From: Selaginella moellendorffii | Lineage: Eukaryota > Plantae > Lycopodiophyta | Assembly: GCF_000143415.4 (NCBI RefSeq) | Contig: NW_003314302.1 | Location: 389,182-453,181, forward strand | Direction: 5' to 3' | Length of the DNA stretch: 64,000 bases | In this document: positions 7,116 through 55,356 of the stretch, one piece after another | Position numbering within the stretch: position 1 is the stretch's first letter | Layout of the letters: every line of letters starts with the position of its first letter | The notes under the pieces: generated by a model | Database searches by the model: none | Seen by the model: the letters and a program-made list of their open reading frames with translations, nothing else | What the model was told of the DNA's origin: nothing | Program-made: the position numbers and the translations under genes

Positions 7116-8176
7116 TATTAAATATTTTTTGGGACAAATGCTACACCAGCATCTTGTCAAAGAATTCTTTTGCCTTTTCCAAATCTCTTTACAATTTAGA
7201 GTTGTATTAAGAACAGCTAGTTATATCCCACTTCAAACAAGCTCATGGCATTTGTGTTACACTTGGCCTTGGCATATGCAGAGATCCTTATTGTCCACAC
7301 CAGATTTCATTGTGGCATGCAATTAAAAACTCCTCTAGCTTTTGATTCTCAGCATATCCCACGAGTATAGCGTTCCAAGAGTAAATGCCCTCTATAGCAT
7401 TCCATTAAAAACCACCTTTGCATTCCCCACATTGGAAATAAGCAAACAGCATTGTTGTGTATGAAATTATATCCCTTTCATCAAACAGGTTTTTTATCTT
7501 AAGAATATTTCCATCATAATGTATGCCTCAACGTCAACAACGTGTTTTGACTCTTTCCAAATGTCTGGCCGTGGTAAATGCAGTCTACCACTTTTGGCGA
7601 ACACCTTCTCAGCAGCCGCTTGTATCATTGTGTTCCGGTGCGGCATTGTGTCAAGATGAGAATGTAAATGCCGTCTGCGACTAGCTTTGTTGACGCGACC
7701 ATGACTTGGAATCGCGTGCAGGGAGGCAAAGCGCAAGTTCTTTGAATCGATCTCCACCAGTCTTTCCGCTCGTGGACAGAGGAACACGAAAGAGAGCTCA
7801 ATACGCTCGTTAGACCCTAAAAAAAACAAAGAAAATCAAACAGATGGAATGCCCCCTCTCTTTCTCGGGCGCTCTGCGAAGAGTTTGAGGTACACATTTC
7901 GTGCCATCTTTATTTCCGAGTTGGACAAGACTGGGAGGAAACTTCGTGTGCCAGGGAGCATATTCAGCTAATAACATAGTTTGAACCACAAATGCGTTTG
8001 CATCCCCCTGTCTCCCCGGTTATATTCGCTAGCAGCAAGCACTCTTGGAGCTGATCAAGTGCAACCAGAAGCTTGAATCCGGAGGAAGTTGCGAGCTGAG
8101 TGCTCGTTCTGGCTGGGGCAAACAGGGGAGGGGGCTGGATTATGCAAACTAGCCATCGATCAGATCAGCTATTGTC

Positions 8177-10580
8177 ATGATTATGCTACTCCTGACCCTC
8201 TTGATGATCCTTGGAGCAAACTTTCTAGCCGCTGGGAAGCTCCTCATGCACACCCAAGACGACGATCACACCCTCACCGATGCCGCCAGCAACGAGCTCC
8301 ACGCCAGGTTCTTAGCCCTCATCACCACAATCCCTTCCCAGCTCGTCTACGATGGAGCCACGGATCCATACTTCCGGGGCCAGGCCATTGGCGACACCTT
8401 GTTTCTCCCGGAATTTAATCTCTCGTTGGTTCTCAACCTCTACTTCTACAACGTCGAGCACTGCGGCCCCGGCTTTAGCCCACATTTTGGTAGCACTGGC
8501 AGCAAGCTTCGCGAAGGATTCACGGCTCTCTTGCCGGATCTTCAAAGTCTCATGAACCGCAGCTATGGTGCCGCCTATGTCACGCAAGGCCAGTTCCAAG
8601 CCGGATACTACATCCAGGGGATGAACTTGCGAGGATCCAATGGATCGTGCTCGTCTCTCCGGATCGAAAACACCACGGATAGTATCGGCTACTGCTACGG
8701 CTACGAGGGGACGCGATTGAGCTTCAGTGCTTTCGACAGGCTCTACCCGGGTTGCCGGATTAAATCCATGAGAAGGCCCGAGTACGTTCTGGAGATGGGA
8801 GAGGATTGCAATGCGGTGTTTAGCGACAGTTCGAACAACGAGGTCTTGTGGCAGTCGAGAACGAAGGGGAGTGGACGGGAGTGCGAGCTTGTTCTCGAGG
8901 AGACGGCGACGATTGGCGTGTATGATCGAAACGGGACTGTGTTAGCGAGATTTGGGACGAACAACTCCACGAATGCGTCCTTGTTTGCGATGCAGGAAGA
9001 TCGAAACATGGTGATCTACGCCATCAGCAGTATGAAGAGTGGCATGCCTGTGTGGAGTTCAGACACTTACAAAGGCGAGTTTTTGAAGAGCTTACGATGA
9101 GATCATACCTTTCTTGTGCAGATCCATCTTCAATTGGGAGGAATGGCACGACGATCAGTCCAGTTTCGCTGCCTTTGCCGAATGGAACGAGCTCAAACTC
9201 GTCCAACAAACGATCAAAGATTCTTGGATTTTGCTTGGGAGCGGTGTCGCTCGTTGTTGGAGTGGCAATTGTCGTGGTGATTTTGCGACGAAGAACGCGC
9301 AGTATAAGAGCTGGTGGGGAAGCATTGAACTGGCTACCACCCGGTAGCCAGGCGAAGAAATACTCGTACGAAGAGCTCCAGGAGGCTACGAAAGGATTTC
9401 ACAAGGAGAACTTGATCGGCACCGGCGGATTTGCGAGTGTATACAAGGTATTCTTCTAAATTCGATGGTCTTTCTTACCGAGAAAAACTCCATTGTTGAT
9501 ACACACACTCAGGGAGTTATAGACAGTCACGTTGTTGCGGTGAAATACTTGACAAGCTCCGATCTATCGGAGAAAGCGAGGCTGGATTTCGAGAATGAGG
9601 TGTCCACGATTAGCCTGCTCCAACACAAAAACGTTGTCAAGCTTTTCGGGTTTTGCTCCGAGAAAGAACACAAGCTCATCGTCTGCGAGCTCGTTGAGAA
9701 TGGGAACCTCTCCGACGCCTTGTTTGGTTAGCAACTCTAAAGAGATCTTTTAAGAAATCATGAAGAGAGTTTCTTCCATTTCAGTGTGGAAGGATTTGCA
9801 GCTAGATTGGACTGCCAGATACAACATTTGTGTGGGTGTTGCCCAAGGTTTGGCATACTTGCACGGAGAAACATCGCAGGCAACCATCGTACACAGAGAT
9901 ATCAAAGCCCTCAACATTCTTCTAGCCAGCGATCTCAAGCCAAAGATCTCGGACTTTGGATTGGCAAGACTGATCCAGCAAAGTCGAAGCTATACCAGCA
10001 CACGAGCAGCAGGAACAGCGTAAGTTATTCCACCAATTCTCTATCTAATTGTTTTTAACTTTTCCATCTCTAGTGGCTATCTAGCTCCAGAGTATGCTCT
10101 CTCTGGTCAGCTCACCGAGAAGGCCGACGTCTATTCGTTTGGGATTCTTGTTCTTGAGATCATAAGTGGAAGAAAAAACATGGACTTCACACTCTTGGAC
10201 AGCGAGTTTTTCTTGCTCGAATGGGTGAGTATGTGGTTTTAAAGTTTAGATCTTCTAGATTTGTGTGATTACCACAGGCATGGAATGCATTCCAAAGTGG
10301 CAATCTCCAAGAGATCATCGACAAGAGACTGGAGGTGGGTGACCAAGAGATTCACGAGATCAAGCGAGTGTTCACAGTTGCTCTCCACTGCACACAAGCC
10401 AGTCAAAACAAGCGCCCAGTGATGTATAGAGTGGTGGGGATGCTCATGGGTGACATGGACATCAGTGGCACCATCTCAAAGCCCGGCTTCCTCTGTGATT
10501 TAAGGCAAAACCCTGAGCAGACCGGCATCAATGACACTCACACTCCCTTTATTGAAACAAAGAGTGCAAAAGATAATTAG
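8177..10580 (+). CDS. Bulb-type (G-type) lectin receptor-like Ser/Thr kinase, ~708 aa; exons 8177-9074, 9122-9447, 9513-9726, 9785-10019, 10074-10224, 10278-10580
   Basis: Signal peptide, B-lectin motif [11 protein letters not shown] helix [22 protein letters not shown] followed by RRR. Kinase motifs [44 protein letters not shown]. The joined exons total 2127 nt in frame; the first intron is GC-AG. Confidence 0.92.
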
Positions 10581-16680: not shown

Positions 16681-17964
16681 CTATGTTGAGACGGATAATT
16701 TTTCCTTCAATGTGCTCTCTGAACTCTCAAGAGCTGACACAAGGAGACTACTACTTCTTCCAGCCTTGGAAATCCATATCTTTACCAGCAGGCACCCGGG
16801 ACTTTGCTGGAACAGCGTCGCCTTAAACTCGGATTTCCCATCAGAATTTCGTTGATCGAATCCTTCTCTTTGATCGCCAGGAGTTCCAGTGATCGCAAAA
16901 GAAGCCGCATCGATCTTGCAAGCCACTCCGCCAGCTTCCAAGTGACTCCCAAGATCTCCCAGAACCTCCAACGCACTGCATTTTCGATCGATGCCCTCCA
17001 GAACGAACGAGAAACTCCCGCTGCTGCTCGTCCCAGTCCCGAAACAACTTCGCCCAGATCCACTCTTCACTGCTCCAGCACTCGAGAAACTCCATGCCAG
17101 CCCCCACCTCGACGTCTTTCCTTGCACAAACTCGGTGGTCTTCACCATCGTCGCTCCACAGCCTCGAATCTCGGCCTTGAGAGCCTTCAAGCTGGATTTC
17201 TTCCCGACCATGCTCGTGTACCAGTGGATCTTCGTCCCGAGCTCCACGCTCTCGCGGATCAGCCTGCTCACAAACCCGGCCTCTCCTCCGGCGCAAACCA
17301 TCTCCTCCGGCGTTCCACCGCAGGCCGTGCGAGGATTCATCCCGGCCTCCTCCATGCTCTCGAAGAACGGTGGATTGCACATACTGAAGTCGAAGATCTC
17401 TTCATCTTTCACCACTCCAACGAGCAGCCTGTGGTTTTCTTCCTCATCTTCACCACCATTCTTCGCGGCGCTTCTCACTTCGATCAGCTCCATGAGGTGT
17501 GGATTCGCCGCGATGTTCCTCCTTCCCCATTCCAGCGCCACACTCGTCACGTCCGTCGCTACGAACTTCCATCCCCGCAAGGAAGCCCCGAGGAGAGGAT
17601 AGATCGCGCTAGCACCGGTCCCAATGTCTAGACCAAGAACTCCCCCCTCTGCATTCTTCCCTGGAGCTGGAAATCCTTGGAGCAAATCCTCGATCCAGTG
17701 GATGTAGTTTGCACGATTCGTCACCGCCGGGCAGAGCTGGCCGTCGGGAATCCACCAGCCGAGAATGCCGTAGTCGCAATCCAAGAGAACTCGAGTGAGC
17801 TCTCTTGTGGCGGCGTAGTCCCTCCAATCGATGCTGCCCCGCCCAGTGGAGGGATTGATCCTCACGTAGCGCGCAAACGAGGCGTAGCGCGCCGCCAGCG
17901 CTGCGAAATCTGGGCTGCCCTCGGCATACCTGTTTCGTGGGTGCGTCGATCGCTTCCTCTTCAT
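16681..17964 (-). CDS. FIO1: METTL16/FIONA1-family RNA N6-adenosine methyltransferase (RlmF-like), intronless, 427 aa
   Basis: HPRNRY, PDFAALA, LCPAVTNRANYIHWIEDLL, SAM-binding LDIGTGASAIYPLLG, catalytic MCNPPFF, GGEAGFV, WYTSMVGKK and QGKTSRWGLAWSF. First ATG at 17964. Confidence 0.93.
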   Translation of the reverse strand: MKRKRSTHPRNRYAEGSPDFAALAARYASFARYVRINPSTGRGSIDWRDYAATRELTRVLLDCDYGILGWWIPDGQLCPAVTNRANYIHWIEDLLQGFPAPGKNAEGGVLGLDIGTGASAIYPLLGASLRGWKFVATDVTSVALEWGRRNIAANPHLMELIEVRSAAKNGGEDEEENHRLLVGVVKDEEIFDFSMCNPPFFESMEEAGMNPRTACGGTPEEMVCAGGEAGFVSRLIRESVELGTKIHWYTSMVGKKSSLKALKAEIRGCGATMVKTTEFVQGKTSRWGLAWSFSSAGAVKSGSGRSCFGTGTSSSGSFSFVLEGIDRKCSALEVLGDLGSHLEAGGVACKIDAASFAITGTPGDQREGFDQRNSDGKSEFKATLFQQSPGCLLVKIWISKAGRSSSLLVSALESSESTLKEKLSVST

Positions 17965-18040
17965 CCAAAGAACCAATATTAGGGTTCTTCGTTCTCCATC
18001 GTCTCCATGGAAGAACCAAGATTAGGGTTCTTCGTCCTCC

Positions 18041-20285
18041 ATGCGCTTTGGCCTTGTCGAGCTCCGCTTGGCAAGATTTCACAGGTGCGCTGCTCTCTCG
18101 TCACGATTCTCGGCCTTTCAAAGAATGCGCTCTCTCTTTGGCCAGATCTTACAGCACTCTCCAGGAGCAGCGCTCCGCGAATCCGCAAGAGCTCCGGCGA
18201 GATCTCGACAGATTATGCGAGGTTCTTGATCCCGCGGCGGTAGATCGTGCTCACCTCACACAGCTGCTCAAGCAGTGCGGGATTCTCCAGTCCACCTCCG
18301 AGGCACGGCGGCTCCATTCTTGGATCGCGAAGACCGGGCTCGATCGGGATCCATTCTTCGCCAACAATGTCGTCCAGATGTACAGCCGCTGCGGCAGCAT
18401 CGACGAGGCCGCCAGGGTTTTCCATGCCACGCCGCGCAAGAACGCCCGATCGTGCGAGATCATGCTCGCGGCATTCGCGAGGAGTGGGGATCTCGATTCG
18501 GCAAAGCAGATGTTCGATGCGATGCCGGAGCCTGGAGTTCCGGCCTGGAATTCCATGATCGCGGCGCATTTCCACAGCGGGGACTCCATCGCGGCGCTGA
18601 GGTTCTTCCAGCGGATGATGGCCGAAGGGATTCGTCCCAATCCACGGAGCTTCGTCGCCGCGCTGGATGCCTGCTCCCGGCTGGAAGAGGGAGATTTCAT
18701 CCACGAGCCCGCGATCGCGGTAGGCCTGGCATCCGACGCCATTGTTGGATTCTCACTAGTGGGCTTCTACAGGCGATGCCACAGGCTAGATCTCGCTCGC
18801 AAAGTCTTTGACAAGGTGGAAGAGATCACCGCGCCGCTGTGGACGCAGATGATCGCAGCGTATGCCAAGGCTGGGCATTTGCTCGAGGCGAGAGCTTTGT
18901 TCGATGGTCTTCCCGAGAAGGACTCCGTGTCGTGGACGTGCATCATCGCAGCTTACGCACACCGAGGCCGATGGATCGAAGCGAAGCAGCTGTTCGACGA
19001 GATGCCCGGCCGCGATGTCATCGCCTGGAACGCGATGATCTCCGCGAATGCCCAGAGCGGGCGCTCGGATCAAGCTCTCGAGCTGCTACTCCTGATGGAT
19101 CTCGACGGCGTCCATCCAAACAGCGTCACCTTCTTGAGCGCTCTCGAGGCTTGCACCAACTTGAGTGATGCTTCCCGAGGATCAAAGCTCCACACGGAAG
19201 GTATGCTCGGCTCTGGCATTGAAAACTCTCGCAAGGTGTCTAACGCGCTCATCAACATGTATGGCAAATGCAGGGAGCTGGGCCGGGCCAAGGCGGTGTT
19301 TGACGGCATGAGCGATCGAGACACGGTTTCCTGGACGACCATGCTCGCATCCTTTGCGGAGAACGGTGACTTGGAGCAAGCAAGCCGAGCTTTCGACCGG
19401 ATCCCGGAGAGACAATGCGTGGCTTTCAACTCGATGCTGGCGGCGTATGCCCAAAACGGGCATATCGAAGAGGCAAAGCAGCTCTACGACGACGCGATCC
19501 ACGAGCCGGACATCGTTGCTTTCACGACGCTGCTCACGGCATTTGCTCAGCACGGCCGAGGCGAGCAGGCGCTGTGCTTGCTCCGGGCCGGGGATTTGGA
19601 AGGACTGGAGATGGATCTCGTCAGCTTCGTGGGGATCCTCGACGCCTGTGCGTGCTGCGGAGCTCTCAACGAGGGAAGATCAATCCACCAGGAGGCTGTT
19701 CTTCGCGGTTTCCAGGACGACGTTACCATCGGCTCGGCGCTCGTCAACATGTATGGGAAGTGTGGACAAGTCGAGCCGGGAAGAGAAGTTTTCGACGGGA
19801 TGCCGTGGAGGAACTCTATCACCTGGAACGCGATGCTCACGGCGTATGCGCAGAACGGGCATAGCGCCGAGGCGCTGGAGCTGTTTCCAGTGATGATCCT
19901 CGAAGGTGCCGAGCCATCCGAGGTAACTTTCATCACGCTTCTCTCGGCTTGCGCTCAAGCGGGACTTTTGCAGGATGGCCTCCGCGTGTTTGCTCTCATG
20001 GAGCGCGACTTTGGAGTGGCTCGCGGCGCCGGGAACGCTGTGTGCCTGGTGGATTTGCTGGGGAGAGCTGGGAGGCTGGAGGCTGCCGAGGAGATGTTTG
20101 CGTGGGTGCCTGTGGAGGAGCGTGATACTGCATGGACGGCCTTGTGGGGGAGCTGTAAGATCCATGGCGATGGTGGGAGAGGTGTGAGAGCCGCCGAGTC
20201 TGTGCTCGCGTTGGATCCAGTGGCGTCTACGCCTTACTCGCTACTCACTGAGGCTCTGGTGATGCCACACCTGGAAATCTACTAA
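18041..20285 (+). CDS. PLS-class PPR protein with E domain (organellar RNA-editing factor type); N-terminus appears frameshifted
   Basis: Repeated PPR motifs (MYGKCG, VSWTTML, AYAQNGH) and an E-domain tail (LVDLLGRAGRL...WTALWGSCKIHGD). No DYW. The only plausible ATG (18041) is out of frame with the PPR body, whose first in-frame ATG is 18378. Confidence 0.85.
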
Positions 20286-32660: not shown

Positions 32661-33344
32661 CACTGTGATGGAAATCTGCTAAGCTCTGCAGCTTTGATCT
32701 TGGAGCTTTGATCTAAACTTTATAGAAGCACATCGAGATGCACGAACCAGTCTCATCGCTTATGGACTAGAAAACTAAAATTTCTTTGTTTGGTCTGACG
32801 TTCCTCAAGGATCAACAAAAACTCCTACCAAGATTCGACTTAACAGAGATTTGATCTCGAAAGAACTACCATCGATCGATCGAACTGGATCTGGAATTCA
32901 AAGACCCAATTTGGTCCTTCGCCAGTGCCTCCTCTTCGCATTGTAGCTGCAAATTCGGAAGGAGAAACGAAAGAAAGTGAGAAATTTTCTCTTGGAGATG
33001 AGAAATCTAAAGCGCTTTACCGGATGGTGTTGTTCGTCCGCATTCTTATCCAGTGAGGAATTGGGCGATTCTGGCGGAGCTTCTTCCCCAGCTTCTGCTT
33101 GATCCGGAACGTCTTGTGCGACGGCTGCGGGAGAATCGATCAACGCCACGCTGAGAAAGCGAAACAGAGAATACATACCATGGCGGCAGCACTGGCGGCG
33201 GCGACACTCCAAAACCCTAGCCAAGAACCCTAAAATCCCGTTAACTTTTTCTATTAGATGACGATACGAAGGTAAAGTTTTACTCCGAGTGGAAGAAAAG
33301 TTCCAAGAGTGGAAACCCCGATTTGGGGAAGAGTCCATTCCTCC

Positions 33345-34214
33345 ATGGATCACGCTCGAGTTCTAGACGAAGATCACAAAGATGGTCACCGCATTTCCAA
33401 CAACAACAACGCTATGGCAACAGCAGCAGTGAGCATCACGCCGGTTGTGGTTGCTCTAGTCACTCTCCTCGTCATTCTCTTCTTGCTGGTAAGCTACTAC
33501 AGACTCCTCGCCTCTTGCTACAAATCCTGGATCACTGGCGACTCTCCCCAAATCCCAGAAACGTCGAATTCTCCTCCGCAAGACCATCAACAAGATCGCG
33601 ATCCCGAAGAGCAGCAGCAGCAGCAGCCGACCCTCTTGATCCAGACCCCCGCTCTCTCGAAATCGCTCATCCAGAGACTCCCGGTCTACAAGAGCTCCAA
33701 GAGCAAGAGAGTATCGTCCGACTGCGCGGTTTGCTTGGGCGATTTCCAAGAGGGCGAGGACGTCAAGATACTTCCAAAGTGTGGCCATGGCTTCCACGTC
33801 GAGTGCATCGATACTTGGCTCTCGATCCACTCCAACGTTTGCCCCCTGTGTCGAGCCCAGGTTGAGGATCCGGCCGCGATCGTTGTCTCGATCGATCCAG
33901 CAGCCGCCCAAGTGGTCGAAGATGGATCCTCTCCACCTCTAGAAGATCATGCCACTATAGGATCTGATCGCGCAGGAGGAGTAGTAACATCGGGGATAAG
34001 GAAGAAGAGCTCCAGTCTCGAGGAAGGGAGCCCCTTGTTTCGATCGATCTTTGCGAGGTTCTCGAGAGCTGGTGCTCCCCCGGATGATCAAAATCCCTCG
34101 CTGCCATCGTCGTCGTCGTCGCCAGAGGATTGCAGGATGAGACGTTCGTGGTCGAGTAGCCGTGTTTTTTCGTTTCGAAGGAACAGGCAGCAGCAAAGCG
34201 ATTCTCTTCCGTAA
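33345..34214 (+). CDS. ATL-family RING-H2 E3 ubiquitin ligase (TM plus RING-H2), intronless
   Basis: Hydrophobic N-terminal helix, GLD-like ALSKSLIQRLP, and RING-H2 CAVC...CGHGFHVECIDTWL...CPLC. First ATG at 33345. Confidence 0.92.
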   Translation: MDHARVLDEDHKDGHRISNNNNAMATAAVSITPVVVALVTLLVILFLLVSYYRLLASCYKSWITGDSPQIPETSNSPPQDHQQDRDPEEQQQQQPTLLIQTPALSKSLIQRLPVYKSSKSKRVSSDCAVCLGDFQEGEDVKILPKCGHGFHVECIDTWLSIHSNVCPLCRAQVEDPAAIVVSIDPAAAQVVEDGSSPPLEDHATIGSDRAGGVVTSGIRKKSSSLEEGSPLFRSIFARFSRAGAPPDDQNPSLPSSSSSPEDCRMRRSWSSSRVFSFRRNRQQQSDSLP

Positions 34215-34766: not shown

Positions 34767-35675
34767 ATGTCATACAAAAGAAAACACTTTATATGGTATT
34801 TTTTCATTCTTAAAATTGTTTCTGCAAAAAGGAAAGTGAGTCTAGAATTTGGAAATAATAACACTTTAACTCGTAATGAAACTGGAATGATAATTGATGA
34901 GGGAATTCAAATAATACATAATAGAATCTCTACTTCAATAATTCCATATTATCCAAGAAATTATGAAGATATACAAGTTATTAATATTGGTGAAAGAGGT
35001 AATATTCTAGTAACTTTTCAACGCATGGATGGTGAAATTCCATATTGTTCATCCGGACAATCTTCAATTAGTAAAAATGTTACTGGTACTTCTATGAGGC
35101 ATGCAATAAGTAATTTAATGAATAAATATAGAGATGATATAATTAGTGCTTCTTCTGATAGATGCCGAATTACATCTAGAGTATATCAACTTGAATATAT
35201 TTTAATTCAAAAACGATATTATTTGTTTTCTTTTGATAAAATAAATACATATAATAACTCTTATTCTCCTTACAAAATTTGTGATACTACTTTAACTACT
35301 TTAAATGCTGGATTTAAAAATAATTATCTTTACAAAGGCCAGTTTATAACATCCCCAAATCGTAAAAATTTATTAATATTAGAATCTAATTGTCAGCTTG
35401 CTCTTTACTCTGGAAAGTATTTATTATGGAAGTCAAGTAATAAAATAGATTATATTGGTGAATGTTCAATTATTCTTCAAAATGATGGAAATTTAGTTTT
35501 ATATACTGAGAAAAAAATTGCAATTTGGTCTAGTAATAAATATTGTTTAAATTGTCTTATTTTTACATTTTTAACTATACAAAATGATTGTAATATAGTT
35601 ACATATGAGGCAAAAGCACCAAATAAAGTATGGTGGACAACAAATACAAATAACCATTTTCTCTGTTTGAGATAA
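34767..35675 (+). CDS. Secreted bulb-type (GNA-like) mannose-binding lectin with an unrecognised N-terminal domain, 302 aa
   Basis: Signal-peptide-like N-terminus and two intact QxDxNxVxY motifs (QNDGNLVLY, QNDCNIVTY). Uninterrupted ORF despite roughly 25% GC. Confidence 0.82.
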   Translation: MSYKRKHFIWYFFILKIVSAKRKVSLEFGNNNTLTRNETGMIIDEGIQIIHNRISTSIIPYYPRNYEDIQVINIGERGNILVTFQRMDGEIPYCSSGQSSISKNVTGTSMRHAISNLMNKYRDDIISASSDRCRITSRVYQLEYILIQKRYYLFSFDKINTYNNSYSPYKICDTTLTTLNAGFKNNYLYKGQFITSPNRKNLLILESNCQLALYSGKYLLWKSSNKIDYIGECSIILQNDGNLVLYTEKKIAIWSSNKYCLNCLIFTFLTIQNDCNIVTYEAKAPNKVWWTTNTNNHFLCLR

Positions 35676-36556
35676 TTATAATTTATAATGGTAATTATAA
35701 AACATTAAAACCAACATTTTTGCTTAAACTATAGAGCACAAATCAGAAAGAAATTGAAATACATTGATCCACATGTCTATCACTAAAAAAGAAAATACTC
35801 CAGCTCTTGCTAACCAAACAAATAGCAAAGTTCATCTTAAAAATAAGATTAGTATTAAACCATATCTTAGCACACCAAACTTATAAAAGAGAGTGTTGAT
35901 GCTTTTGGTGTTACTGTAGCTTTAGCATTTACTTTGCAGGCCCTCAATGATAACTTGGGTTTGTGTTGCCCAAGGCTAGGTAACAATAAAAGGGGGTATC
36001 AGGGGGAGTATATGGATTTGGTCTTGGTTGTGTTGTGGTGATGATATAATGTCATGGCTGTAGGACATAGCATTACTAACATTATGTCAAGCATGGCACC
36101 TTGGCTATAGTGCAATTCTGCCAAAAACATACAATAGTACCCTTTTATAAATAGAAAAATGGATTTTAGATTATACATTGTGAGTGCTTACTTGGCCCTC
36201 ACAACATCATTGAGAGAGCTTAAACAAAATAATAATAATTTTTTGTCATGTTCTATACTAATTTTAGATGCCCATCAGGCACCAAAAGAGCTAAAACAGG
36301 TCATACATTTTCATTAATACCTTAATAATGCTTATATTAATTGAAAAAATAAATATATCAATTACTATACCACATAGATAAACAAAAGTTTTGACCACAT
36401 ATTATTTTAGTATTATTAGAAAAATATATCAAAGTTATATCAAAATACTCAACTTTAAAACCATACCGTTGGACTCCTTCGCCGTGGCGAGATCTGGACC
36501 GTTAATGTCATTGTAGTGCCTCTGGCAGTTTTAGGGCTCGTTCCATCGCGAAGAAA

Positions 36557-37569
36557 ATGCGGTGCTTGGGGCACCTTCATATATCCGTGGTGGAGGGAAG
36601 GAATCTCTCTGTCAAGATCGATGCGCGGCCCTCTGTTTTGCTACAGATCGGCAAAGAACAGGTAAAATGCTGGTTATTTTTATCCATCTCTAGAGTTTTG
36701 GATGATGGATTTCTTTCTCTAGGCTAGAACGGCGCCGCTCAAGAACTTAAGTTCCAAATGGCTGGCAGAGTTTAGACTGGATGTGGCGTCGGAGGACTCT
36801 TGCCTCACGGTAACAAGTTCTCTTCTTCTCCTTTTATTCGTGTTTCTATCTCCTTGATCTTCATAGGTGACACTTCTGGATGATCACTCCAGCCATCCAG
36901 TGGGAAAATCTCTCGTTCCCATCCGTGATCTAATCTCGATCGGGACCGCGGTTCAGTGGGTCACACTGAAAGATCCTTCCGGAAGAGATGTTGGACAAAT
37001 ATGTCTAGTTCTTCGGTTTCTCAAAGGTTTGCTCCATGGCAAAGCCAAAAACGATTTTTCTAGATTTTTCTTCTCCTCTTTTTCAGAGATCAGTAACGTC
37101 AAGCGAGAGAACGGTGCCTCCATTCCCAGCGCTCACCACCATCTCCTAAATGGCGATGCAAACTCGGAGCTTTCGTCCTCCACCTCGTCTTTGTCGCGCG
37201 AAGATGACGATCAAGACGGGATCGTGCCACAGGACGACGATCATCGCTCCAAAAAGAAAGATCAAGCCAAGAACACGGGACGAAGCAAATACTTCGTCGT
37301 CGCTGCTACCGCCGCCGCGACGATCCTCCTCTCAGTTTTCGCCTGGACGAGCCACCAGAAACAAAAGTCCAAGTATCACGAGGTTCGTATCCTATACATC
37401 GTTTTCTTCGTGAGCTTGAGCTCTTCCTCTCCAGGTGAAAGAAGGTGATACGATGAGTTCTATCGCGAACAAGTATGGATTGTCCCCGGACGATGTTTTC
37501 GAAGCCAACATGAGCGTTACCAGCGATCCCGATAGGATCTATCCCGGGGACAAGATCTACATTCCATGA
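36557..37569 (+). CDS. C2 domain - transmembrane - LysM protein, 260 aa; exons 36557-36661, 36723-36809, 36867-37026, 37087-37382, 37435-37569
   Basis: All introns are GT-AG and 52-61 nt; the joined CDS is 783 nt in frame. C2-like LHISVVEGRNL...W..EF...VTLLD...VGKSLVPIRDL...WVTL...GQICLVL. TM YFVVAATAAATILLSVFAW. LysM YHEVKEGDTMSSIANKYGL...EAN....DPDRIYPGDKIYIP. Confidence 0.85.
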
Positions 37570-37642
37570 AGATCATTCTCGCAAGGTTTCCTGGAGAGAT
37601 GGTAGTTTATCTAAGATCACAATGAGAACTTTCTTATAGCTC

Positions 37643-40246
37643 ATGTTTGTGACCTTGAATAGATCTAAGCAAGAAGTATCGCGCTTTGCGAGCGCGATCA
37701 AGCAGTGCCGCGACTCGCTCGATCCTCACAAGGGCGAGTTCGTCCACACCCAGATCCTCGCCTCCTCCCACGCCAGCAATGTCTTCCTCTCTAATCTCCT
37801 CGTCGACATGTACTCCAAGTGTGGCCGCCTGGATCGATCGCTCCAGGTCTTCCATGCCGCCGAGTGCCGCAATGTTTTCTCCTGGAACATCATCGTCGCG
37901 GCGTTCGCCCATCACGGGCATCTGGGCGATGCTCGATTCTTCTTCTCTCGCATGCCGCAGGTGGGATCCGTGGCGGCCACCGTTGTGATCCTAGCACTTG
38001 CCGAGGAAGGGCATTTTGCCGAGGCCGAAAACCTGTACTGTTTCATACCTGAGAAAGACACAGCGTCGATGAACGCAATGATCAACTTGTACGGTAGAAC
38101 TGGTGATGTTTCCCAGGCACGAACTGTATTTGACGCGATTAAAAATCCGGACGTGGTATCGTGGACAAGCATGCTTCAGGCAAATGCCCTTTCCGGGCAT
38201 TTGCAGGATGCAAAGAATCTCTTCCGCGCCATGCCTCAAAGAAACGACTACTGCTGGAACACTATGCTGAATGGATTTGCATCGCACGGGGACGTCACCA
38301 CAGCCTGCTTGATCTTGCAACTGATGCCGCAGCATAATGTCGTGTCCTGGACGATCATGCTCACCGCGTATGCCGAAAGGGGGCATCTTGCGTTAGCTTT
38401 GTCTGTATTTGATTCCGTCCCGGCACGGACCGTGCGTTTGTGGAACGCGATGCTCGACGCCTGCGACGAGGTTGGCGAAGCCAAGTTTGTGTTTTGGAAG
38501 ATGCCGTACTGGGATAATGTGTCCTGGAACACGATAATTGCCGCAATGGCACAGAGTGGATGCTTGATTGAGGCCCGCCGTACGTATGGGCAGCTTCTGG
38601 AGCCGGCAAACGAAGGCCCGATTGCGGTGGAAAGCCTTGTACGGAGAAAAGGTGGCGGTGAGGATGATAATACGTCGCTAATCAAGAGCTATGCCGAGTG
38701 CCGGCTTCTTCACGAGTGCGAGATTCTGTTCCGGAACACACCCGTCAGAAACGTTTTTACATGGACGGTTATGATCGCCGCTTTTGCGGAGACAGGCAAT
38801 CTGGAATCGACTACACAATTTTTCCAGAAAATGCCGGCGTGGAATGTTGTTGCCTGGAATATCATCGTACAAGCAAATGCCCAAGGGGGGCATCTGGATA
38901 AAGCCAAAGAGCTGTTTGACTTATCGTCGGCTAGAAGTGTTGTTTCCGCCAATGCCCTGATCGAAGCGTACGGAAGCGAGGAGAAACTATGCTACTCGTG
39001 CCGGATATTCGATCGGATGCCACAGTGGGATTCCTGGACGTGGGTAGCCGTTATTGGAGCGTATGCCGGGAGTGGGAATCTTGACATGTGCGAGAGAGTG
39101 TTCGCAAAGATTCCCGAAAAGGACGTGGTTTCGTGGACCGTGTTAATCCAGGCCTTCGCAGAGAATGGGTATCTTGACAGAGCGGAAATGGCATTTCGGC
39201 TGATTCCTTTCAGAAACTCCGTCTGCTGCAATGTGATTCTCACGGCATATTCCCGGGAGGGGCATGACGTACAAGCAAAGGCCGCTTTTGATTCCATGCC
39301 GTACAAGAGCATCGCCTCTTGGAACATAACTATGACCGCCTTAGGTGCCGCATCTGCAGGTCAAGTCTTCAGGAATATGCCCCAGTGGAATGCCGTGTCC
39401 TGGAACACTGTCCTCTCAGCAAATGCCGCACAAGGGCATTTGGAAAATGCGATCGGCATCTTCCACGCCATGCCACTGTCCAACACCGCGTCGTACAACT
39501 CCATGATCCAGGCGTACGGGAGCAACAGCCGGCCCATGGACGCCCGCCACGTGTTCGATTCCATGGACCAGCGCGACGTTGTGACGTGGAACGTTCTCGC
39601 CCAGGCATTGGCCGGGAATTTCCACGTGGACGAGGCCATGCTAGTGCTGGAAAAGATGCCCCACCACAGCCTCGTGGCGGTCAACTCGATGATCACGGCC
39701 CACGCCCAGGCCGGCCACGCACACGTGGCAAGGCACCTCTTCAAGAATATGCCCGCCCGGAACGTGGTGTCGTGGAGCGCCACCATTGGAGCGTACGCCC
39801 AGGCCGGGTATATTCCCGAATCCCTGGAGCTTGTACGGGCGATGCTGCTGGAAGGAGTGAAGCCAAACGAGGTAACTCTCGTGGCCATTCTCACCGGGTG
39901 TAGTCACTCGGGGCTCTTGCACGAAGCTCGCGAGCTCTTCTTTTTCATAACCAGAGATTTGGAGCTGCGCCCCTCGATCGATCACTACTGCTGCATTGTC
40001 GATCTCTTGGGTCGATCCAAGCAGCTCAACTTTGCCGAGGAGCTCGTCTCGAGCATGCCGTATCGACCGAATACCACCGTGTGGACGACTTTATTGGGAG
40101 CTTGCAAAACTCAAGGCGATTTCCAGCGAGGAGCTAGCGCTGCAAAACAGGCACTAGCACTGGATCCCGAGGGCTCTGGAGTTTACGTCCTTCTATCAAA
40201 CATCTACGCTTCAATCCGGAAAGAGAAACATCTTACGGTGTTCTAG
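37643..40246 (+). CDS. PLS-class PPR protein with a long run of short (~31-aa) repeats and an E domain, 867 aa
   Basis: MYSKCG, repeated MP.. (N/D)VVSW motifs, and an E-domain tail HYCCIVDLLGR...WTTLLGACK...YVLLSNIYA. No DYW. Confidence 0.92.
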   Translation: MFVTLNRSKQEVSRFASAIKQCRDSLDPHKGEFVHTQILASSHASNVFLSNLLVDMYSKCGRLDRSLQVFHAAECRNVFSWNIIVAAFAHHGHLGDARFFFSRMPQVGSVAATVVILALAEEGHFAEAENLYCFIPEKDTASMNAMINLYGRTGDVSQARTVFDAIKNPDVVSWTSMLQANALSGHLQDAKNLFRAMPQRNDYCWNTMLNGFASHGDVTTACLILQLMPQHNVVSWTIMLTAYAERGHLALALSVFDSVPARTVRLWNAMLDACDEVGEAKFVFWKMPYWDNVSWNTIIAAMAQSGCLIEARRTYGQLLEPANEGPIAVESLVRRKGGGEDDNTSLIKSYAECRLLHECEILFRNTPVRNVFTWTVMIAAFAETGNLESTTQFFQKMPAWNVVAWNIIVQANAQGGHLDKAKELFDLSSARSVVSANALIEAYGSEEKLCYSCRIFDRMPQWDSWTWVAVIGAYAGSGNLDMCERVFAKIPEKDVVSWTVLIQAFAENGYLDRAEMAFRLIPFRNSVCCNVILTAYSREGHDVQAKAAFDSMPYKSIASWNITMTALGAASAGQVFRNMPQWNAVSWNTVLSANAAQGHLENAIGIFHAMPLSNTASYNSMIQAYGSNSRPMDARHVFDSMDQRDVVTWNVLAQALAGNFHVDEAMLVLEKMPHHSLVAVNSMITAHAQAGHAHVARHLFKNMPARNVVSWSATIGAYAQAGYIPESLELVRAMLLEGVKPNEVTLVAILTGCSHSGLLHEARELFFFITRDLELRPSIDHYCCIVDLLGRSKQLNFAEELVSSMPYRPNTTVWTTLLGACKTQGDFQRGASAAKQALALDPEGSGVYVLLSNIYASIRKEKHLTVF

Positions 40247-43159: not shown

Positions 43160-44155
43160 TCACTTGCAACACATTGTCACAAACCCAAATAAGTCATCGA
43201 AGAACCGATCCAACGCCGGAGATGGAGGCCCCAAGTAGAACGCATGGCCGGCATCATCGTATTCCACGACCTGGACGTGCTTGTTTGCCCCCTGTAGACG
43301 TCGTGCGACCTCTACTTGCCTCACGTACAAACAATCCTTGCGCCCAATCGCCATGAAAATTGGCGCCATCTCTCCCGGAACTCGATGTTCCTCCAGGAAC
43401 TTGGGCTGGTTGCAATAGGGATGATCGCGATCGGCCCCAATTGGGAGCGCGAGCTTCCAGCAGAGATCCGAGCTCTCCATGGTGAGGATCTCGCCATTGG
43501 CAAACTCCACCTCCGAGTCCTTGCGGTCCATGCCGCCGTAGAAAGGCTGGACGAGGACGACTCCCACGACTTTGATCGTGGGATTTTTCGTTTCCTCGAC
43601 GTTCTTGAGCTCCTGGCGGAAGAACCAATCCAGTGCCGAGTGTTGGGCGATGTTTCCCCCAGCGCTATCGCCCGAGATGAAAACACGGGATAAATCGCCA
43701 TGGGAGCGAATCCAATCCTCGCCCAAGCACTGTGGTTCTTGGAGCCATTGCAGGGTTCTAGCGGCGTCTTGGTACGCTGCCGGCAGCCGGTGCTCGGGAG
43801 CGAGCCTGTAATCCACAGAGACCACCAGGGCTTTGAGATTTCTCGACATGGATTCACAGAAATAGTGGAAAAAGTGAAACTTTGGGGTGAAAACCAGGAA
43901 TCCACCACCGTGGAAGTAGACGAACACTGGCAGCTTCGAATCGTGCTCGCATTCCGGGAGGAAAATCCGTGCCGAGAGGCCTGAAATCTCATCAATCACA
44001 ATGTCCTTGGACGCAACACCTTGTACAAAGTGAGGAATTGCTGGGATGGATTCCAAAGGCTGCCTGGTGGCAGCAAAGTCGTTGTAGTTTGGATCATCCT
44101 TGTTGTCGATGGGAAGCCCCGGGAGAGACGCCTTAATCCAGTGGAGTAGCGCCAT
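43160..44155 (-). CDS. Carboxylesterase (CXE/GID1-like alpha/beta hydrolase_3), intronless, 331 aa
   Basis: YFHGGGF oxyanion motif, VSVDYRLAPEHRLPAAY, nucleophile GDSAGGNI, catalytic Asp (GRKDCL) and His (AGHAF). Confidence 0.93.
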   Translation of the reverse strand: MALLHWIKASLPGLPIDNKDDPNYNDFAATRQPLESIPAIPHFVQGVASKDIVIDEISGLSARIFLPECEHDSKLPVFVYFHGGGFLVFTPKFHFFHYFCESMSRNLKALVVSVDYRLAPEHRLPAAYQDAARTLQWLQEPQCLGEDWIRSHGDLSRVFISGDSAGGNIAQHSALDWFFRQELKNVEETKNPTIKVVGVVLVQPFYGGMDRKDSEVEFANGEILTMESSDLCWKLALPIGADRDHPYCNQPKFLEEHRVPGEMAPIFMAIGRKDCLYVRQVEVARRLQGANKHVQVVEYDDAGHAFYLGPPSPALDRFFDDLFGFVTMCCK

Positions 44156-47665: not shown

Positions 47666-49804
47666 ATGCGTTTCAGGTCATTTCAAGCTGGTCTCAAATG
47701 GAGGAGGCGACCCAGGAAAGCGGCCAGCTCCCACGGTAATCCCTCTCAATCCATCCCGCAATCCACTGCGCAGTCGATAGAGGATGTGGAGGATGCGCTG
47801 GGCAAGCTGCCGCAGCTCCGTCACGGCAGCAGGGCGACATTCATCGGCAATCTTCTCCAGCGATGCACAGCTCCCGAGCATCTGGCCATCGGCCGCGCGG
47901 TCCACCAGCAGATCGCTCGATCGGGAGACGCCCGCGACAGATTCGTCCAGAATCTCCTCATCCAGATGTATGGGAAGTGTGGCGCTGTCCAAGAAGCCAG
48001 GAAGATCTTCGACGCCATAGCTGACAAGAACGTCTTCTCCTGGAACATCATGATCGGGGCATACGTAAACAATGGCTTGGACGATCACGCTCTGGATCTG
48101 TATAAGCGAATGGCGCCGGCTCTTCCAAGCGCCGTCACCTTTGTCTCGGTGCTCGAGGCGTGCTCCAGCTTGGTGGACGTGAATTCTCTCCATGGCCGGA
48201 TCAAAGAGCTCGGGCTGGAAACCAATCCAGTCGTCGCCACCGCGCTCATCAACGCGTTTAGCGCTGCTGGAAGCTTGCTCTCGGCGGAAGAAGCCTTCCA
48301 CTGCGTGGATTGCAAGGACGCTGTGTGCTGGACGTCGATGATCACCGCATTTGCCAGGAATGGAGACGGCATTGGAGCTCTCAAGACGTTCTCGCGGATG
48401 AACTTGGAAGGTATCTTTCCCGACGAGATTTGCATTGTGAGTGTCATAACCGCGTGCTCGCTTCTCAGGTCCTTGCTGCTCGCGCACCGGCTCTACAAGA
48501 GCGTCGTCCGAGCGATGGATTGTCTCTACCACGTAGAAGTCGGTGCCGCGCTCGTCAACATGTTTGCAAAGTGTGGAAGCCTGGCCGATGCGTGGAAGGT
48601 TTTCGATCGGAGCTACAAGGACGACGTTGTGCTGTGGAACACGATGATCTCCGTCTACGCCGACTATGGTGAGAACCACAAGGCTCTCACGCTCTACCGG
48701 GAAGGAATGCGCAAGGAGTTTGATATGGCTCCCGATGCCGTGACTTTCGTGGTGCTGCTGGAGGTTTGCACGAACTTGAAGGATCTCAAGCAGGGGACTC
48801 TCGTCCACAAGGACGCCGTTGGCGAGGGGCTTGACAGGGATCCAGTGGTGGCCAACGCGGTGGTAAACATGTATGGGAAGTGTGGAGAGCTCCAGCACGC
48901 CAGGAAAGTTTTCGATCTCCGGAGTGACAAACAGAGGGTGGTGTCGTGGAACGGGATGATGGCGCTCTACTTGCAGCACGGACAGGGTGAAAAGGCTCTC
49001 GAGCTCTACAAGACGATGAGCGTGGAGGCCGACGAGCTGACTTACGTGACGTTGCTGGCCGCGTGTGGCAGCGTTGGCGACGTTGAAGAAGGCCGCAGAG
49101 CTCACGCGAAGATCACTGCCAGTGGATTCGAGGCTGTTCCGGTGGTCGCGAATTCGCTGCTCAGCATGTATAGCAAGTTTGGGCGGTGTGACGAAGCGAA
49201 GGTGGTGTTTGAGAAGATCCAGCGGAAGGAAACAGGGGCTTTCAACTCGATGATCTCGGCACTCACAGAACACGGGAAGTTTGAGGAGGCTCTCGGCTTG
49301 TTCCCGCTCATGGACATAGATGGTGTGAGGCCGAACGACGTGACTTTCATCAACGTGTTCTTGGCTTGCACCCATGCCGGACTGGTTGACAAGGCCTGGG
49401 AGCTGTTCCTGTGCATGGTCGAGGAATGTGGGATCGAGCCTTCAGAGAAGCACTGCGGTTGCGTTGTGGATCTGCTAGGACGAGCCGGGAAGCTAGAGGA
49501 GGCCGAGAAGTTTATCGCGAACATGGAAGCTCGGCCGGGGGCTGTGATCTGGATGACACTCTTGGGTGCGTGCAAGCTCCACGGAGATATCGATCGAGGG
49601 AGATTTGCGGCAGAGAAGGCTATCGAGATCGATCCTGCTGACTCCGGGCCTTACGTTGCATTAGCGAGCATCTTCATGGCAGCCGGTATGAAAGACGAGG
49701 CTGATAAGTTGAGAAAGCGGCTTAGCGAGCAGCAGAGAAGGCTTAAGCAGTCTCAGATACGAGAACAAGGCGTGGAATTCACCAGAGAAGAAGGACAAGC
49801 TTGA
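47666..49804 (+). CDS. PLS-class PPR protein with E domain, 712 aa
   Basis: Basic transit-peptide-like N-terminus, P-L-S triplets (MYGKCG, VFSWNIMI), and E domain HCGCVVDLLGRAGKL...WMTLLGACKLHGD...YVALASIF. No DYW. Confidence 0.93.
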   Translation: MRFRSFQAGLKWRRRPRKAASSHGNPSQSIPQSTAQSIEDVEDALGKLPQLRHGSRATFIGNLLQRCTAPEHLAIGRAVHQQIARSGDARDRFVQNLLIQMYGKCGAVQEARKIFDAIADKNVFSWNIMIGAYVNNGLDDHALDLYKRMAPALPSAVTFVSVLEACSSLVDVNSLHGRIKELGLETNPVVATALINAFSAAGSLLSAEEAFHCVDCKDAVCWTSMITAFARNGDGIGALKTFSRMNLEGIFPDEICIVSVITACSLLRSLLLAHRLYKSVVRAMDCLYHVEVGAALVNMFAKCGSLADAWKVFDRSYKDDVVLWNTMISVYADYGENHKALTLYREGMRKEFDMAPDAVTFVVLLEVCTNLKDLKQGTLVHKDAVGEGLDRDPVVANAVVNMYGKCGELQHARKVFDLRSDKQRVVSWNGMMALYLQHGQGEKALELYKTMSVEADELTYVTLLAACGSVGDVEEGRRAHAKITASGFEAVPVVANSLLSMYSKFGRCDEAKVVFEKIQRKETGAFNSMISALTEHGKFEEALGLFPLMDIDGVRPNDVTFINVFLACTHAGLVDKAWELFLCMVEECGIEPSEKHCGCVVDLLGRAGKLEEAEKFIANMEARPGAVIWMTLLGACKLHGDIDRGRFAAEKAIEIDPADSGPYVALASIFMAAGMKDEADKLRKRLSEQQRRLKQSQIREQGVEFTREEGQA

Positions 49805-54201: not shown

Positions 54202-55356
54202 ATGAGCACTTGGATGGATACACCCTCTACATCCTCCCCGGAGAACTCTTCCCCTCCTTCTTCTTCTTCTTCTTCTTCTTCCTCTCTCCGGGGATGGGCA
54301 TCCAATGCCACCGTCGCAGTGGCGATGGCGATGAACCACAGCATCCCCGCGGGATCGTCCGGCAGCCCTGGAGGATCCAGCGTGGAGATGAGCGCGCGCT
54401 TCAATCCCTCCATGGCGATCATCATCGTGGTGCTGCTGGGCACATTCTTCTTCATGGGAATCCTCTCCATCTACGTGAAGAAATGCGTCACCACCGAGGC
54501 CGACCTGGAGCGCCACCAGATTCCAATCGCGAGCTGGACGATCGATCACAACCCGCGCTGGGTATCGCAGCGATCGTCCTCGGCCGGCGGCCTCTCGTCG
54601 CTGCTCCAGATCCAGCAGCAGCAGATCCACATCCAGAGCCAGCTCGGGCTGGACAAGGCGTCGATTCAAGCGCTGCCCATCGTCGTCGCCAAGCCCACCG
54701 CCAAGAACCCTAATCACGAGTGCTGCGTGTGCTTGGGGGAATTCCAGGAGCAAGAATTCGTGCGCCTCCTCCCGGGATGCGGCCATTTCTTCCACGTCGA
54801 GTGCATCGATCTATGGCTGCTCGCGCACACCACTTGCCCTCTCTGCCGATTCAAGCTCACCCCGGACAACGTCCACGCCGCCGGCGCCGTGGTCCTCGAC
54901 GTCCCGCAGGAATCGCTGGAAAATCTCCCGCAGCAGCGGCATCGAGCGCCGGAATCCAGCCGCATTCGCTCGATCATCGCTAGGGTTTGGGGTTTCCAGG
55001 GGGAGCGCGCGCGCCGGGGGCAAGAATCCGCGAATTCGGCGCAAGACGATCACCAAAATCCACGCCAGGACGATCATCATCAACATCATCATCAGCAGCA
55101 GCAGCAGCAGCAAGATCACGAGCAGCAGCCGCAAGCCCACCAGGAAATCTCTGTTTCTCCCAGCGATGCATTGGAGCAGGGGAGCGTGGTGGATCAAGCA
55201 CAGCTCCAAGAATGTGGGGACCAAGAACAGCAAGAACACCACCACAGCTTGGCACCCCTTTTGCTACTCAAGAAGGTATGGGATGTTTTTAGGTGCTGGA
55301 AAATGGGGAGATTGGTTGCAAGTGGGAGAATCTTTGGCAGCAGCAGCGGCAGCTAG
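54202..55356 (+). CDS. ATL-family RING-H2 E3 ubiquitin ligase, 384 aa, intronless
   Basis: FNPSMAIIIVVLLGTFFFMGILSIYV TM helix, GLD motif (GLDKASIQALP), RING-H2 CCVC...CGHFFHVECIDLWL...CPLC, and a Q/H-rich tail. Confidence 0.93.
   Translation: MSTWMDTPSTSSPENSSPPSSSSSSSSSLRGWASNATVAVAMAMNHSIPAGSSGSPGGSSVEMSARFNPSMAIIIVVLLGTFFFMGILSIYVKKCVTTEADLERHQIPIASWTIDHNPRWVSQRSSSAGGLSSLLQIQQQQIHIQSQLGLDKASIQALPIVVAKPTAKNPNHECCVCLGEFQEQEFVRLLPGCGHFFHVECIDLWLLAHTTCPLCRFKLTPDNVHAAGAVVLDVPQESLENLPQQRHRAPESSRIRSIIARVWGFQGERARRGQESANSAQDDHQNPRQDDHHQHHHQQQQQQQDHEQQPQAHQEISVSPSDALEQGSVVDQAQLQECGDQEQQEHHHSLAPLLLLKKVWDVFRCWKMGRLVASGRIFGSSSGS

Follow-up and report, generated by a model that had tools for sequence, protein, structure and literature searches.

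A C2/LysM membrane protein gene in Selaginella moellendorffii and its probable place in the green-lineage family of Chlamydomonas MIN1

The 64,000-nucleotide stretch of Selaginella moellendorffii DNA analysed here (assembly GCF_000143415.4, contig NW_003314302.1, positions 389,182–453,181 of the forward strand; hereafter the window) carries, at window positions 36557–37569 on the + strand, a gene whose 260-residue product has a C2 domain at its N-terminus and a single LysM domain at its C-terminus, with a disordered spacer and one hydrophobic segment between them. The locus is a genuine five-exon gene, confirmed here and annotated in GenBank as SELMODRAFT_444228 (EFJ19342.1, UniProt D8S822), where it bears the label hypothetical protein. 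Judged from its sequence and relatives, the best explanation of this protein is that it is an orthologue of an ancient green-lineage C2/transmembrane/LysM family, of which MIN1 of Chlamydomonas would be the characterised member. The architecture is rare in land plants and is already described in the green lineage.

The initial annotation had proposed a five-exon gene missed by the track of open reading frames (ORFs), and its coordinates proved exact, the exons being those of SELMODRAFT_444228. Read over positions 35800–38400, the five exons are joined by GT–AG splicing throughout and total 783 nt with the TGA stop included. Exon 1 (36557–36661) holds the start codon and encodes residues 1–35, with the first C2 strands, and is followed by the donor GTAAAA at 36662. 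Exon 2 (36723–36809; residues 36–64) continues the C2 domain with a conserved K-W-L-x-x-F strand and alone scores 41 bits with a hidden Markov model (HMM) of the family C2, while exon 3 (36867–37026; residues 65–117 and the first base of codon 118) ends the domain with a conserved C-L-V-L-R-F strand and alone scores 85 bits. Exon 4 (37087–37382), which on its own translation gives residues 119–216, opens with an acidic, Ser-rich disordered linker (37087–37244, residues 118–170), followed by a basic patch on the N-terminal side of the membrane segment (37245–37289, residues 171–185), the Ala/Thr-rich and moderately hydrophobic transmembrane segment itself (37290–37349, residues 186–205) and a short basic stretch with three Lys between that segment and the LysM (37350–37373, residues 206–213). 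The LysM (37377–37566, residues 215–260) is interrupted by intron 4 (37383–37434) and has its body in exon 5 (37435–37569, residues 217–260 with the stop). Introns 1–4 measure 61, 57, 60 and 52 nt, all running from GT to AG with pyrimidine-rich acceptors, and have a GC content of 0.33–0.46 against 0.52 in the exons.

Taken singly, the exon translations are exact consecutive pieces of SELMODRAFT_444228 (residues 1–35, 36–64, 65–117, 119–216 and 217–260), and codon 118, split as G and AG over intron 3, yields E118. Intron 3 (37027–37086, 60 nt) is in frame and stop-free, and a word-index search with the uninterrupted exon 3–intron 3–exon 4 stretch returned one protein, SELMODRAFT_444228. The exons were searched one at a time, and the database protein was used for all full-length analyses. 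A second entry, SELMODRAFT_443644, is an allele that differs by N121D. The mechanically called ORF at 36867–37448 reads through intron 3, and its 20 intron-coded residues have no counterpart in SELMODRAFT_444228; were this intron retained, the C2 domain and the spacer would be separated by 20 extra residues and the protein left unbroken.

A gene-model artefact, in which two genes had been fused, was rejected on the canonical splice sites and the consistent exon phases. It is also contradicted by a homologue in the liverwort Calypogeia fissa (GCA_965154635.1, locus 6001–8665), whose C2 coding pieces break at approximately the same positions as the Selaginella exons, and by transcriptome ORFs of homologues that carry both domains. 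Several family members are such transcriptome ORFs (TRINITY, MMETSP), and one is encoded without interruption by a Logan contig of 1.4 kb, so that a single mRNA carries both C2 and LysM in homologues. Scanned in six frames with HMMs, the whole window gave family C2 and LysM signal in these exons only, and chance is therefore not an issue; neither a second family member nor a PPASP gene was found in the window.

The layout that had been read from the letters alone, namely a C2 domain, an acidic/Ser linker, a basic patch, one transmembrane segment and a single C-terminal LysM, with neither signal peptide nor kinase, was recovered in full by Pfam, AlphaFold2 and hydropathy. On SELMODRAFT_444228, Pfam places C2 at residues 5–98 (30.9 bits, cut-off 22) and LysM at residues 215–260 of 260 (47.3 bits, cut-off 20.9). 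Single-exon searches returned the LysM only (46.2 bits on exon 5 alone, against the same cut-off of 20.9), with C2 giving no score in pieces of 29–53 residues; the Pfam assignment of C2 rests on the database protein because the single exons are too fragmented to score. AlphaFold2, run with an alignment of 22 sequences, predicts an eight-strand sandwich for residues 1–120 (predicted local distance difference test score, pLDDT, 92–98), disorder at residues 134–184 (pLDDT <50), a helix at 188–208 and a beta-alpha-alpha-beta LysM at 213–259 (pLDDT 90–95). With three sequences, the C2 and LysM folds are again confident and the hydrophobic segment is not helical. The top Foldseek matches to the first fold in the PDB are all C2 domains (E ~2e-7), including plant SYT1 C2A, CAR4, Munc13 C2B and a Trichomonas C2, and the family C2 profile matches myoferlin, synaptotagmin-1, Munc13 and E-Syt2.

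Hydropathy gives one hydrophobic segment, residues 186–205, with a Kyte-Doolittle 19-mer mean of 1.96, and residues 172–186 on the N-terminal side of the helix include six Lys or Arg for a net charge of +5. No N-terminal hydrophobic signal is seen by hydropathy (no targeting-peptide predictor was run), and the first C2 strand forms the N-terminus. Eight residues separate the helix from the LysM. Classical tail-anchored proteins have their helix within about 30 residues of the C-terminus; here 55 residues follow it, and the predicted single-pass membrane protein to which these features point is for that reason called tail-anchor-like.

The LysM is the end of the chain, and no kinase domain has a Pfam match in SELMODRAFT_444228. 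The plant-receptor models LysM1_NFP_LYK, LysM2_CERK1 and LysM3_LYK4_5 all stay under their cut-offs on the exons and on the database protein. The G-D-T and Asn positions, which in other LysMs form the lining of the glycan groove, are conserved in this domain. Its closest solved relative by sequence is E. coli Kbp (E 2e-5), followed by SafA and MltD. Kbp (YgaU) carries, as the Selaginella LysM does, a C-terminal I-Y-P-G-x-x-x-x-I-P motif at the very end of the chain, but it is a soluble bacterial cytoplasmic potassium sensor built of BON and LysM, with no C2 and no membrane segment; a LysM of this subtype need not, therefore, bind wall glycans.

A word search with SELMODRAFT_444228 found two other proteins of the same layout, one from Klebsormidium nitens and one from a JGI sample. 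A profile of these three sequences was then used in an exhaustive HMMER search of 1.84 billion representatives of 50%-identity clusters, which gave 6834 matches at E ≤0.001. The best 150 of the 6834 (floor 85 bits) were scanned with HMMs of the family C2 and LysM and with a hydropathy window, and it is to these 150 that the distribution given here refers. A layout of C2, spacer, single hydrophobic segment and LysM at the end of the chain is shared by at least about 30 representatives. They come from streptophyte algae (Mesostigma, Chlorokybus, Klebsormidium, Chara, Coleochaete, Spirogloea, Closterium and Netrium), from prasinophytes (Nephroselmis, Pycnococcus, Pseudoscourfieldia and Pyramimonas) and from core chlorophytes (Tetraselmis, a member of the Pedinophyceae, Neomeris and the volvocine Astrephomene). 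When the 22-sequence alignment was used in a word-index search, at least eight proteins were returned, a result of little use for distribution. In the Closterium members the helix and LysM are preceded by two C2 domains. Giant proteins of 1000–3900 residues with 5–15 matched stretches, the best-scoring of which are C2, make up many of the top HMMER matches; no LysM was found in these proteins by HMM scan.

The Selaginella and Astrephomene proteins can be aligned over their full length, the alignment starting at the first C2 strand and running through the transmembrane segment to the last LysM strand (E 2e-17), and the Astrephomene protein matches the Selaginella/Klebsormidium-type profile at E 5e-34. 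A maximum-likelihood tree splits streptophytes from chlorophytes with a Shimodaira–Hasegawa-like approximate likelihood ratio (SH-aLRT) support of 95 on each side. Selaginella is paired with the liverwort sequence (87) inside the streptophyte-algal grade, and the order of the streptophytes is approximately that of the species tree. Two Logan sequences are placed by the tree only, one among Zygnematophyceae and one among chlorophytes. A gene tree that follows the species tree points to vertical descent from a green ancestor, and a horizontal origin of the Selaginella gene was rejected on the same ground.

Across the family, 40 to 250 residues of spacer separate the C2 from the helix, which in the tabulated two-domain members combines moderate hydrophobicity (Kyte-Doolittle ~1.3–2.6) with a high content of Gly, Ala and Thr. 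Most members have 48–61 residues after the helix and 0–2 after the LysM. The gap between the two is 3–9 residues in most members and includes one to four Lys or Arg (usually two to four); the longer gap of Coleochaete has seven. Outside land plants, the LysM with this short basic neck is the most conserved part of the family. Nearly all members have a C-x4-C pair in the first LysM helix, the two positions being Ser and Lys in Selaginella.

Among embryophytes, the best 150 matches include Selaginella and the liverwort Calypogeia fissa only. Absence from other land plants is provisional, the sampling of ferns, hornworts and lycophytes in the searched library being uncertain. The Calypogeia fissa copy, which has C2 but no LysM, scores 129 bits, well over the 85-bit floor, and its C2 is 52% identical to that of Selaginella. 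It keeps the C2, the spacer and the helix, and its chain ends 21 residues past the helix, within the range of classical tail-anchored proteins. No LysM coding piece was found in the 14.7-kb Calypogeia locus, where the best six-frame HMM match reached 7 bits against 104 for the Selaginella control, a score that rules out a hidden LysM exon there. The loss of the LysM in the liverwort, together with the replaced Cys of Selaginella, suggests that constraint on the LysM has been relaxed in land plants. Taken with the partly degenerate C2 site and LysM of Selaginella, the LysM-less liverwort copy suggests that the family is being dismantled in land plants.

The initial annotation had described C2 as a membrane binder that often uses Ca2+; the C2 fold stands, and the calcium probably does not carry over, since most of the canonical Ca2+ ligands appear to be missing. 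In a profile alignment to the C2A domain of synaptotagmin-1, with the ligands set at the positions that we take to be those of synaptotagmin-1, the family lacks the insertion in which the first acidic ligand lies, and loop 3 is shortened. The Asp of a D-P-Y motif is kept in streptophyte-algal members and is Arg24 in Selaginella, where as in the liverwort R-P-S-V stands in place of D-P-Y-V; chlorophytes also lack the Asp. The five acidic ligands of a Ca2+-dependent C2 of the synaptotagmin C2A type are thus not found in the Selaginella protein, whose C2 would probably bind independently of Ca2+.

Mittelmeier and colleagues reportedly described MIN1 in 2008 as having an N-terminal C2, a C-terminal LysM and a transmembrane sequence between the two, and proposed for it a location in the plastid envelope. 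In two papers that deal with it, MIN1 is presented as a C2/LysM protein of the Chlamydomonas eyespot proteome, with attachment of the chloroplast envelope to the plasma membrane as its postulated role (PMC3084665, PMC3276157). Mutants of min1 have miniature, disorganised eyespots in the absence of acetate, and their ChR1 and EYE2 are reduced (PMC3084665, PMC3276157). 'C2+LysM' has been listed as an architecture of green algae (Chlamydomonas) and early plants that was lost in angiosperms (Zhang et al., 2009, PMC2728734); a search of the supplements of that paper for the Selaginella gene ID and for 'C2+' returned nothing. The view that the architecture was an unusual one has consequently given way, in part, to that of a combination already on record (PMC2728734) with a genetically characterised representative in MIN1.

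Our link to MIN1 rests on architecture, on taxon and on a volvocine homologue. Like MIN1, the Selaginella protein is a C2/LysM protein of the green lineage, and a homologue from the same order as Chlamydomonas aligns with it over its full length and falls in the same tree; the sequence compared was that of this volvocine relative and not that of MIN1. The two differ in that MIN1 is known through the eyespot, a structure that Selaginella does not have. From the wider MIN1 family the Selaginella protein differs in its C2, with Arg in place of the D-P-Y Asp of streptophyte algae, and in its LysM, which is without the two family Cys.

To a plastid outer-envelope tether of the MIN1 type, with a cytosolic C2 and the LysM on the intermembrane-space face, we give about an even chance of being the correct reading. 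The C2 domain and the spacer would stay in the cytosol, because a folded domain of 120 residues without a signal peptide is not expected to cross a membrane, and the 55-residue tail with the LysM would cross it. The type II orientation previously proposed, with C2 cytosolic and LysM on the other side of the membrane, accordingly remains the most reasonable one, as an inference. The anchor would sit in the outer membrane of an organelle; the plastid outer envelope, where MIN1 has been proposed to lie, is the most likely one. Anchors of plastid and mitochondrial outer membranes combine a moderately hydrophobic transmembrane domain with a C-terminal positively charged region (PMC4010795), and it is because the family helix is moderately hydrophobic, with conserved positive charge on its C-terminal side, that an outer-membrane anchor is suggested; such conserved charge would be unusual for insertion into the endoplasmic reticulum (ER). 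The plastid division proteins PDV1 and PDV2 of the outer envelope are precedents for a topology in which the bulk of the protein is cytosolic and the tail lies beyond the membrane (PMC4010795). Their N-terminal part is cytosolic, and a single C-terminal helix leads to a short intermembrane-space tail that contacts partners (PMC4010795), as in the topology proposed for the Selaginella protein, but they have neither C2 nor LysM and no sequence relationship to it, and the likeness is one of layout only.

In such a tether, the LysM would lie flat against the membrane on the intermembrane-space side, and the C2, on its flexible spacer, would bind a second membrane, for example the plasma membrane, or a protein there. 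The protein would then be a plastid tether or positioning device and not a receptor, and the ligand of its LysM may be a glycan of the intermembrane space (peptidoglycan where present) or a protein partner. Because algae without an eyespot and the flagellate-less Zygnematophyceae have the family, its ancestral role should have been more general than eyespot assembly.

Several observations weigh against this tether. The envelope location of MIN1 is advanced as a hypothesis and not as a demonstration in two papers that discuss it (PMC3084665, PMC3276157), and EYE2 and ChR1 are co-positioned in most min1 cells (Boyd et al., 2011), which weakens a simple tether model. The comparison behind it is with a volvocine relative of the same architecture rather than with C. 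reinhardtii MIN1, and since Selaginella is without an eyespot, any function there must be more general. The charge of the N-terminal flank of the helix varies from −1 to +8 across the family, so that the positive-inside rule alone does not fix the orientation, and the 55 residues past the Selaginella helix are more than classical tail-anchored proteins have. Finally, the Selaginella LysM is without the two Cys of nearly all its relatives and the liverwort orthologue has no LysM; the domain may be losing its role in land plants.

By analogy with bacterial anchors that join the outer membrane to the wall, the LysM might instead bind peptidoglycan, or its lipid-linked precursors, between the envelope membranes as the core function of the protein, an explanation that we regard as possible but unlikely. 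Selaginella has the whole pathway (MurA–G, MraY, Ddl and PBP; PMC4815162 Table S5), and the pathway is also present in streptophyte algae and several of the prasinophytes that have the family, Nephroselmis for example. Held 4–8 residues off the membrane, a LysM would be well placed for a lipid-linked ligand or a thin layer, and the envelope location proposed for MIN1 would put the domain in the correct space, where another LysM protein, DipM, acts on plastid peptidoglycan (PMC4015805). Against this stands the distribution of the pathway. A full Mur/PBP set is found in Selaginella, Physcomitrella, Sphagnum, Nephroselmis and some Micromonas, and a near-full set in many angiosperms, while of this set only Ddl, MurE and MurG are present in Chlamydomonas and Volvox, with MurB in addition in Volvox (van Baren et al., 2016, PMC4815162 Table S5). 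The Volvocales nonetheless have the family, in Astrephomene and in the C2+LysM protein MIN1 of Chlamydomonas, although MurA, C, D, F, MraY and PBP are missing from Chlamydomonas and Volvox; conversely, no two-domain protein of Physcomitrella, Sphagnum or angiosperms, which keep the pathway, is among the best 150 of the 6834 matches. The expected agreement between the phylogenetic profile of the family and that of the plastid Mur/PBP genes is therefore not seen.

The LysM protein that does track the pathway is PPASP, encoded in Selaginella by genes 438100 and 438219 and not by 444228 or 443644 (PMC4815162). It resembles the protein described here in that a lone hydrophobic helix precedes one C-terminal LysM, which is predicted to lie on the far side of the membrane (PMC4815162), but its 21-residue helix is N-terminal, with neither C2 nor spacer, whereas that of the C2/LysM protein starts at residue 186. 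PPASP co-occurs with the Mur pathway; the C2/transmembrane/LysM family, present in Volvocales that lack most Mur genes, does not. EYE2 of Chlamydomonas offers a further case of a single-pass LysM protein in the region of the chloroplast envelope of an alga without the full Mur pathway, and its LysM has been proposed by its authors to mediate protein contacts (PMC3084665); it differs in having a transit peptide, an N-terminal LysM, a thioredoxin domain, a probable inner-envelope location and no C2. The LysM-less liverwort orthologue also counts against a peptidoglycan anchor, as does the closest solved LysM, that of the cytoplasmic K+ sensor Kbp and not of a wall-binding enzyme. Peptidoglycan may be bound in Selaginella, but its binding cannot be the defining function of the family. 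Of the anchoring to plastid-envelope peptidoglycan that had been suggested for the gene, the envelope survives, as the compartment proposed for MIN1, and the peptidoglycan fits poorly, because the Volvocales have the family without most Mur genes.

In a bolder form of the MIN1-type tether, these proteins would be an ancestral green-lineage pin between plastid and cell cortex that Selaginella has kept, with the tail anchor in the outer envelope, the LysM on an N-acetylglucosamine-containing component of the intermembrane space and the C2 on the plasma membrane; we consider this distinctly unlikely. The LysM of such a pin would grip residual peptidoglycan or lipid-linked Mur products, and most land plants would have replaced the device on becoming multiplastidic. 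Many Selaginella species have one giant, positioned chloroplast per epidermal cell (PMC10784399). If the pin were real, the eyespot phenotype of Chlamydomonas min1 would be a special case of general plastid anchoring.

An anchor in the ER, from which the C2 on its long spacer would bind the plasma membrane or another organelle in the manner of synaptotagmins and E-Syts, with a minor, lumenal LysM, is very unlikely. In its favour, the C2 domains of ferlin, synaptotagmin, Munc13 and E-Syt give the best alignments with the family C2 profile, the long and variable spacer (40–250 residues) is typical of tethers, and the liverwort copy works without a LysM. Synaptotagmins, E-Syts, SYT1 and ferlins have the same C2 fold, give the best profile matches and are likewise membrane-anchored proteins that reach a second membrane through C2, but the first three are anchored at the N-terminus and ferlins at the C-terminus, and they have several C2 domains with complete Ca2+ sites where the Selaginella protein has one C2 with an incomplete site and a LysM. 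The conservation of the LysM and its basic neck outside land plants indicates, moreover, that the LysM is not an accessory; the genetics and proteomics of MIN1 point to the chloroplast and eyespot; and the features of the anchor fit organelle outer membranes better.

A type II sensor of the secretory pathway or plasma membrane, with an ER-inserted helix, a LysM that binds chitin or peptidoglycan fragments in the lumen or outside the cell, and a C2 that relays the signal, has in its favour the good generic Pfam LysM match with its G-D-T and Asn groove positions and a plausible N-in, C-out orientation, yet it is highly improbable, because the plant-receptor LysM subfamily models all stay under their cut-offs, there is one LysM and not three, no signalling domain is present and no relay function is known for the C2, the LysM is too near the membrane to reach into the wall, the moderately hydrophobic helix with its basic flank is unlike the usual ER/plasma-membrane signature, and the family, oldest in unicellular algae and most frequent there, has been lost from most land plants, the opposite of the expansion of immune LysM receptors. 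CERK1/LYK, CEBiP/LYP and LysMe proteins share with it a LysM fold and an association with membranes; the LYK and LYP receptors, however, are type I proteins with a signal peptide, three N-terminal LysMs (one in LysMe) and a kinase or glycosylphosphatidylinositol anchor. Microbial-glycan sensing, one of the roles first suggested for the gene, is thus left without support by the receptor models and by a LysM some 4–8 residues from the membrane, and with it the idea of a novel immune glycan sensor is removed as unsupported.

Taken singly, the Selaginella gene is an ordinary, annotated one from a family already in the literature, and its value is comparative. Orthologues of the family occur in every streptophyte-algal grade and in one vascular plant, including groups without an eyespot or a flagellate stage, and the presence of the family in eyespot-less groups means that its function must exceed eyespot assembly. 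Selaginella, Klebsormidium and the Zygnematophyceae are places in which the function of a membrane-hugging LysM beyond an organelle or cell membrane can be studied.

Only 73 nt separate the stop codon of the gene (37567–37569) from the initial ATG of the following ORF on the + strand, an intronless pentatricopeptide-repeat (PPR) ORF of 867 residues (37643–40246), so that the 3' end of the one and the 5' end of the other must be tightly packed or overlapping. Two further intronless PPR ORFs lie on the same strand at 17937–20285 and 47666–49804, and one of the three also matches the Pfam E motif PF20431. RING-H2 ORFs occupy 33309–34214 and 54202–55356 on the + strand (zf-RING_2, E ~1e-13 to 1e-14). 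On the − strand, the ORFs at 16681–17976 and 43160–44155 between them match Methyltransf_10 (METTL16-like RNA methyltransferase, 274 bits) and Abhydrolase_3 (carboxylesterase-type, 188 bits). Just upstream of the gene, a + strand ORF of 302 residues (34767–35675) has a weak, sub-threshold match to B_lectin (D-mannose-binding), at 27 bits against a cut-off of 32.

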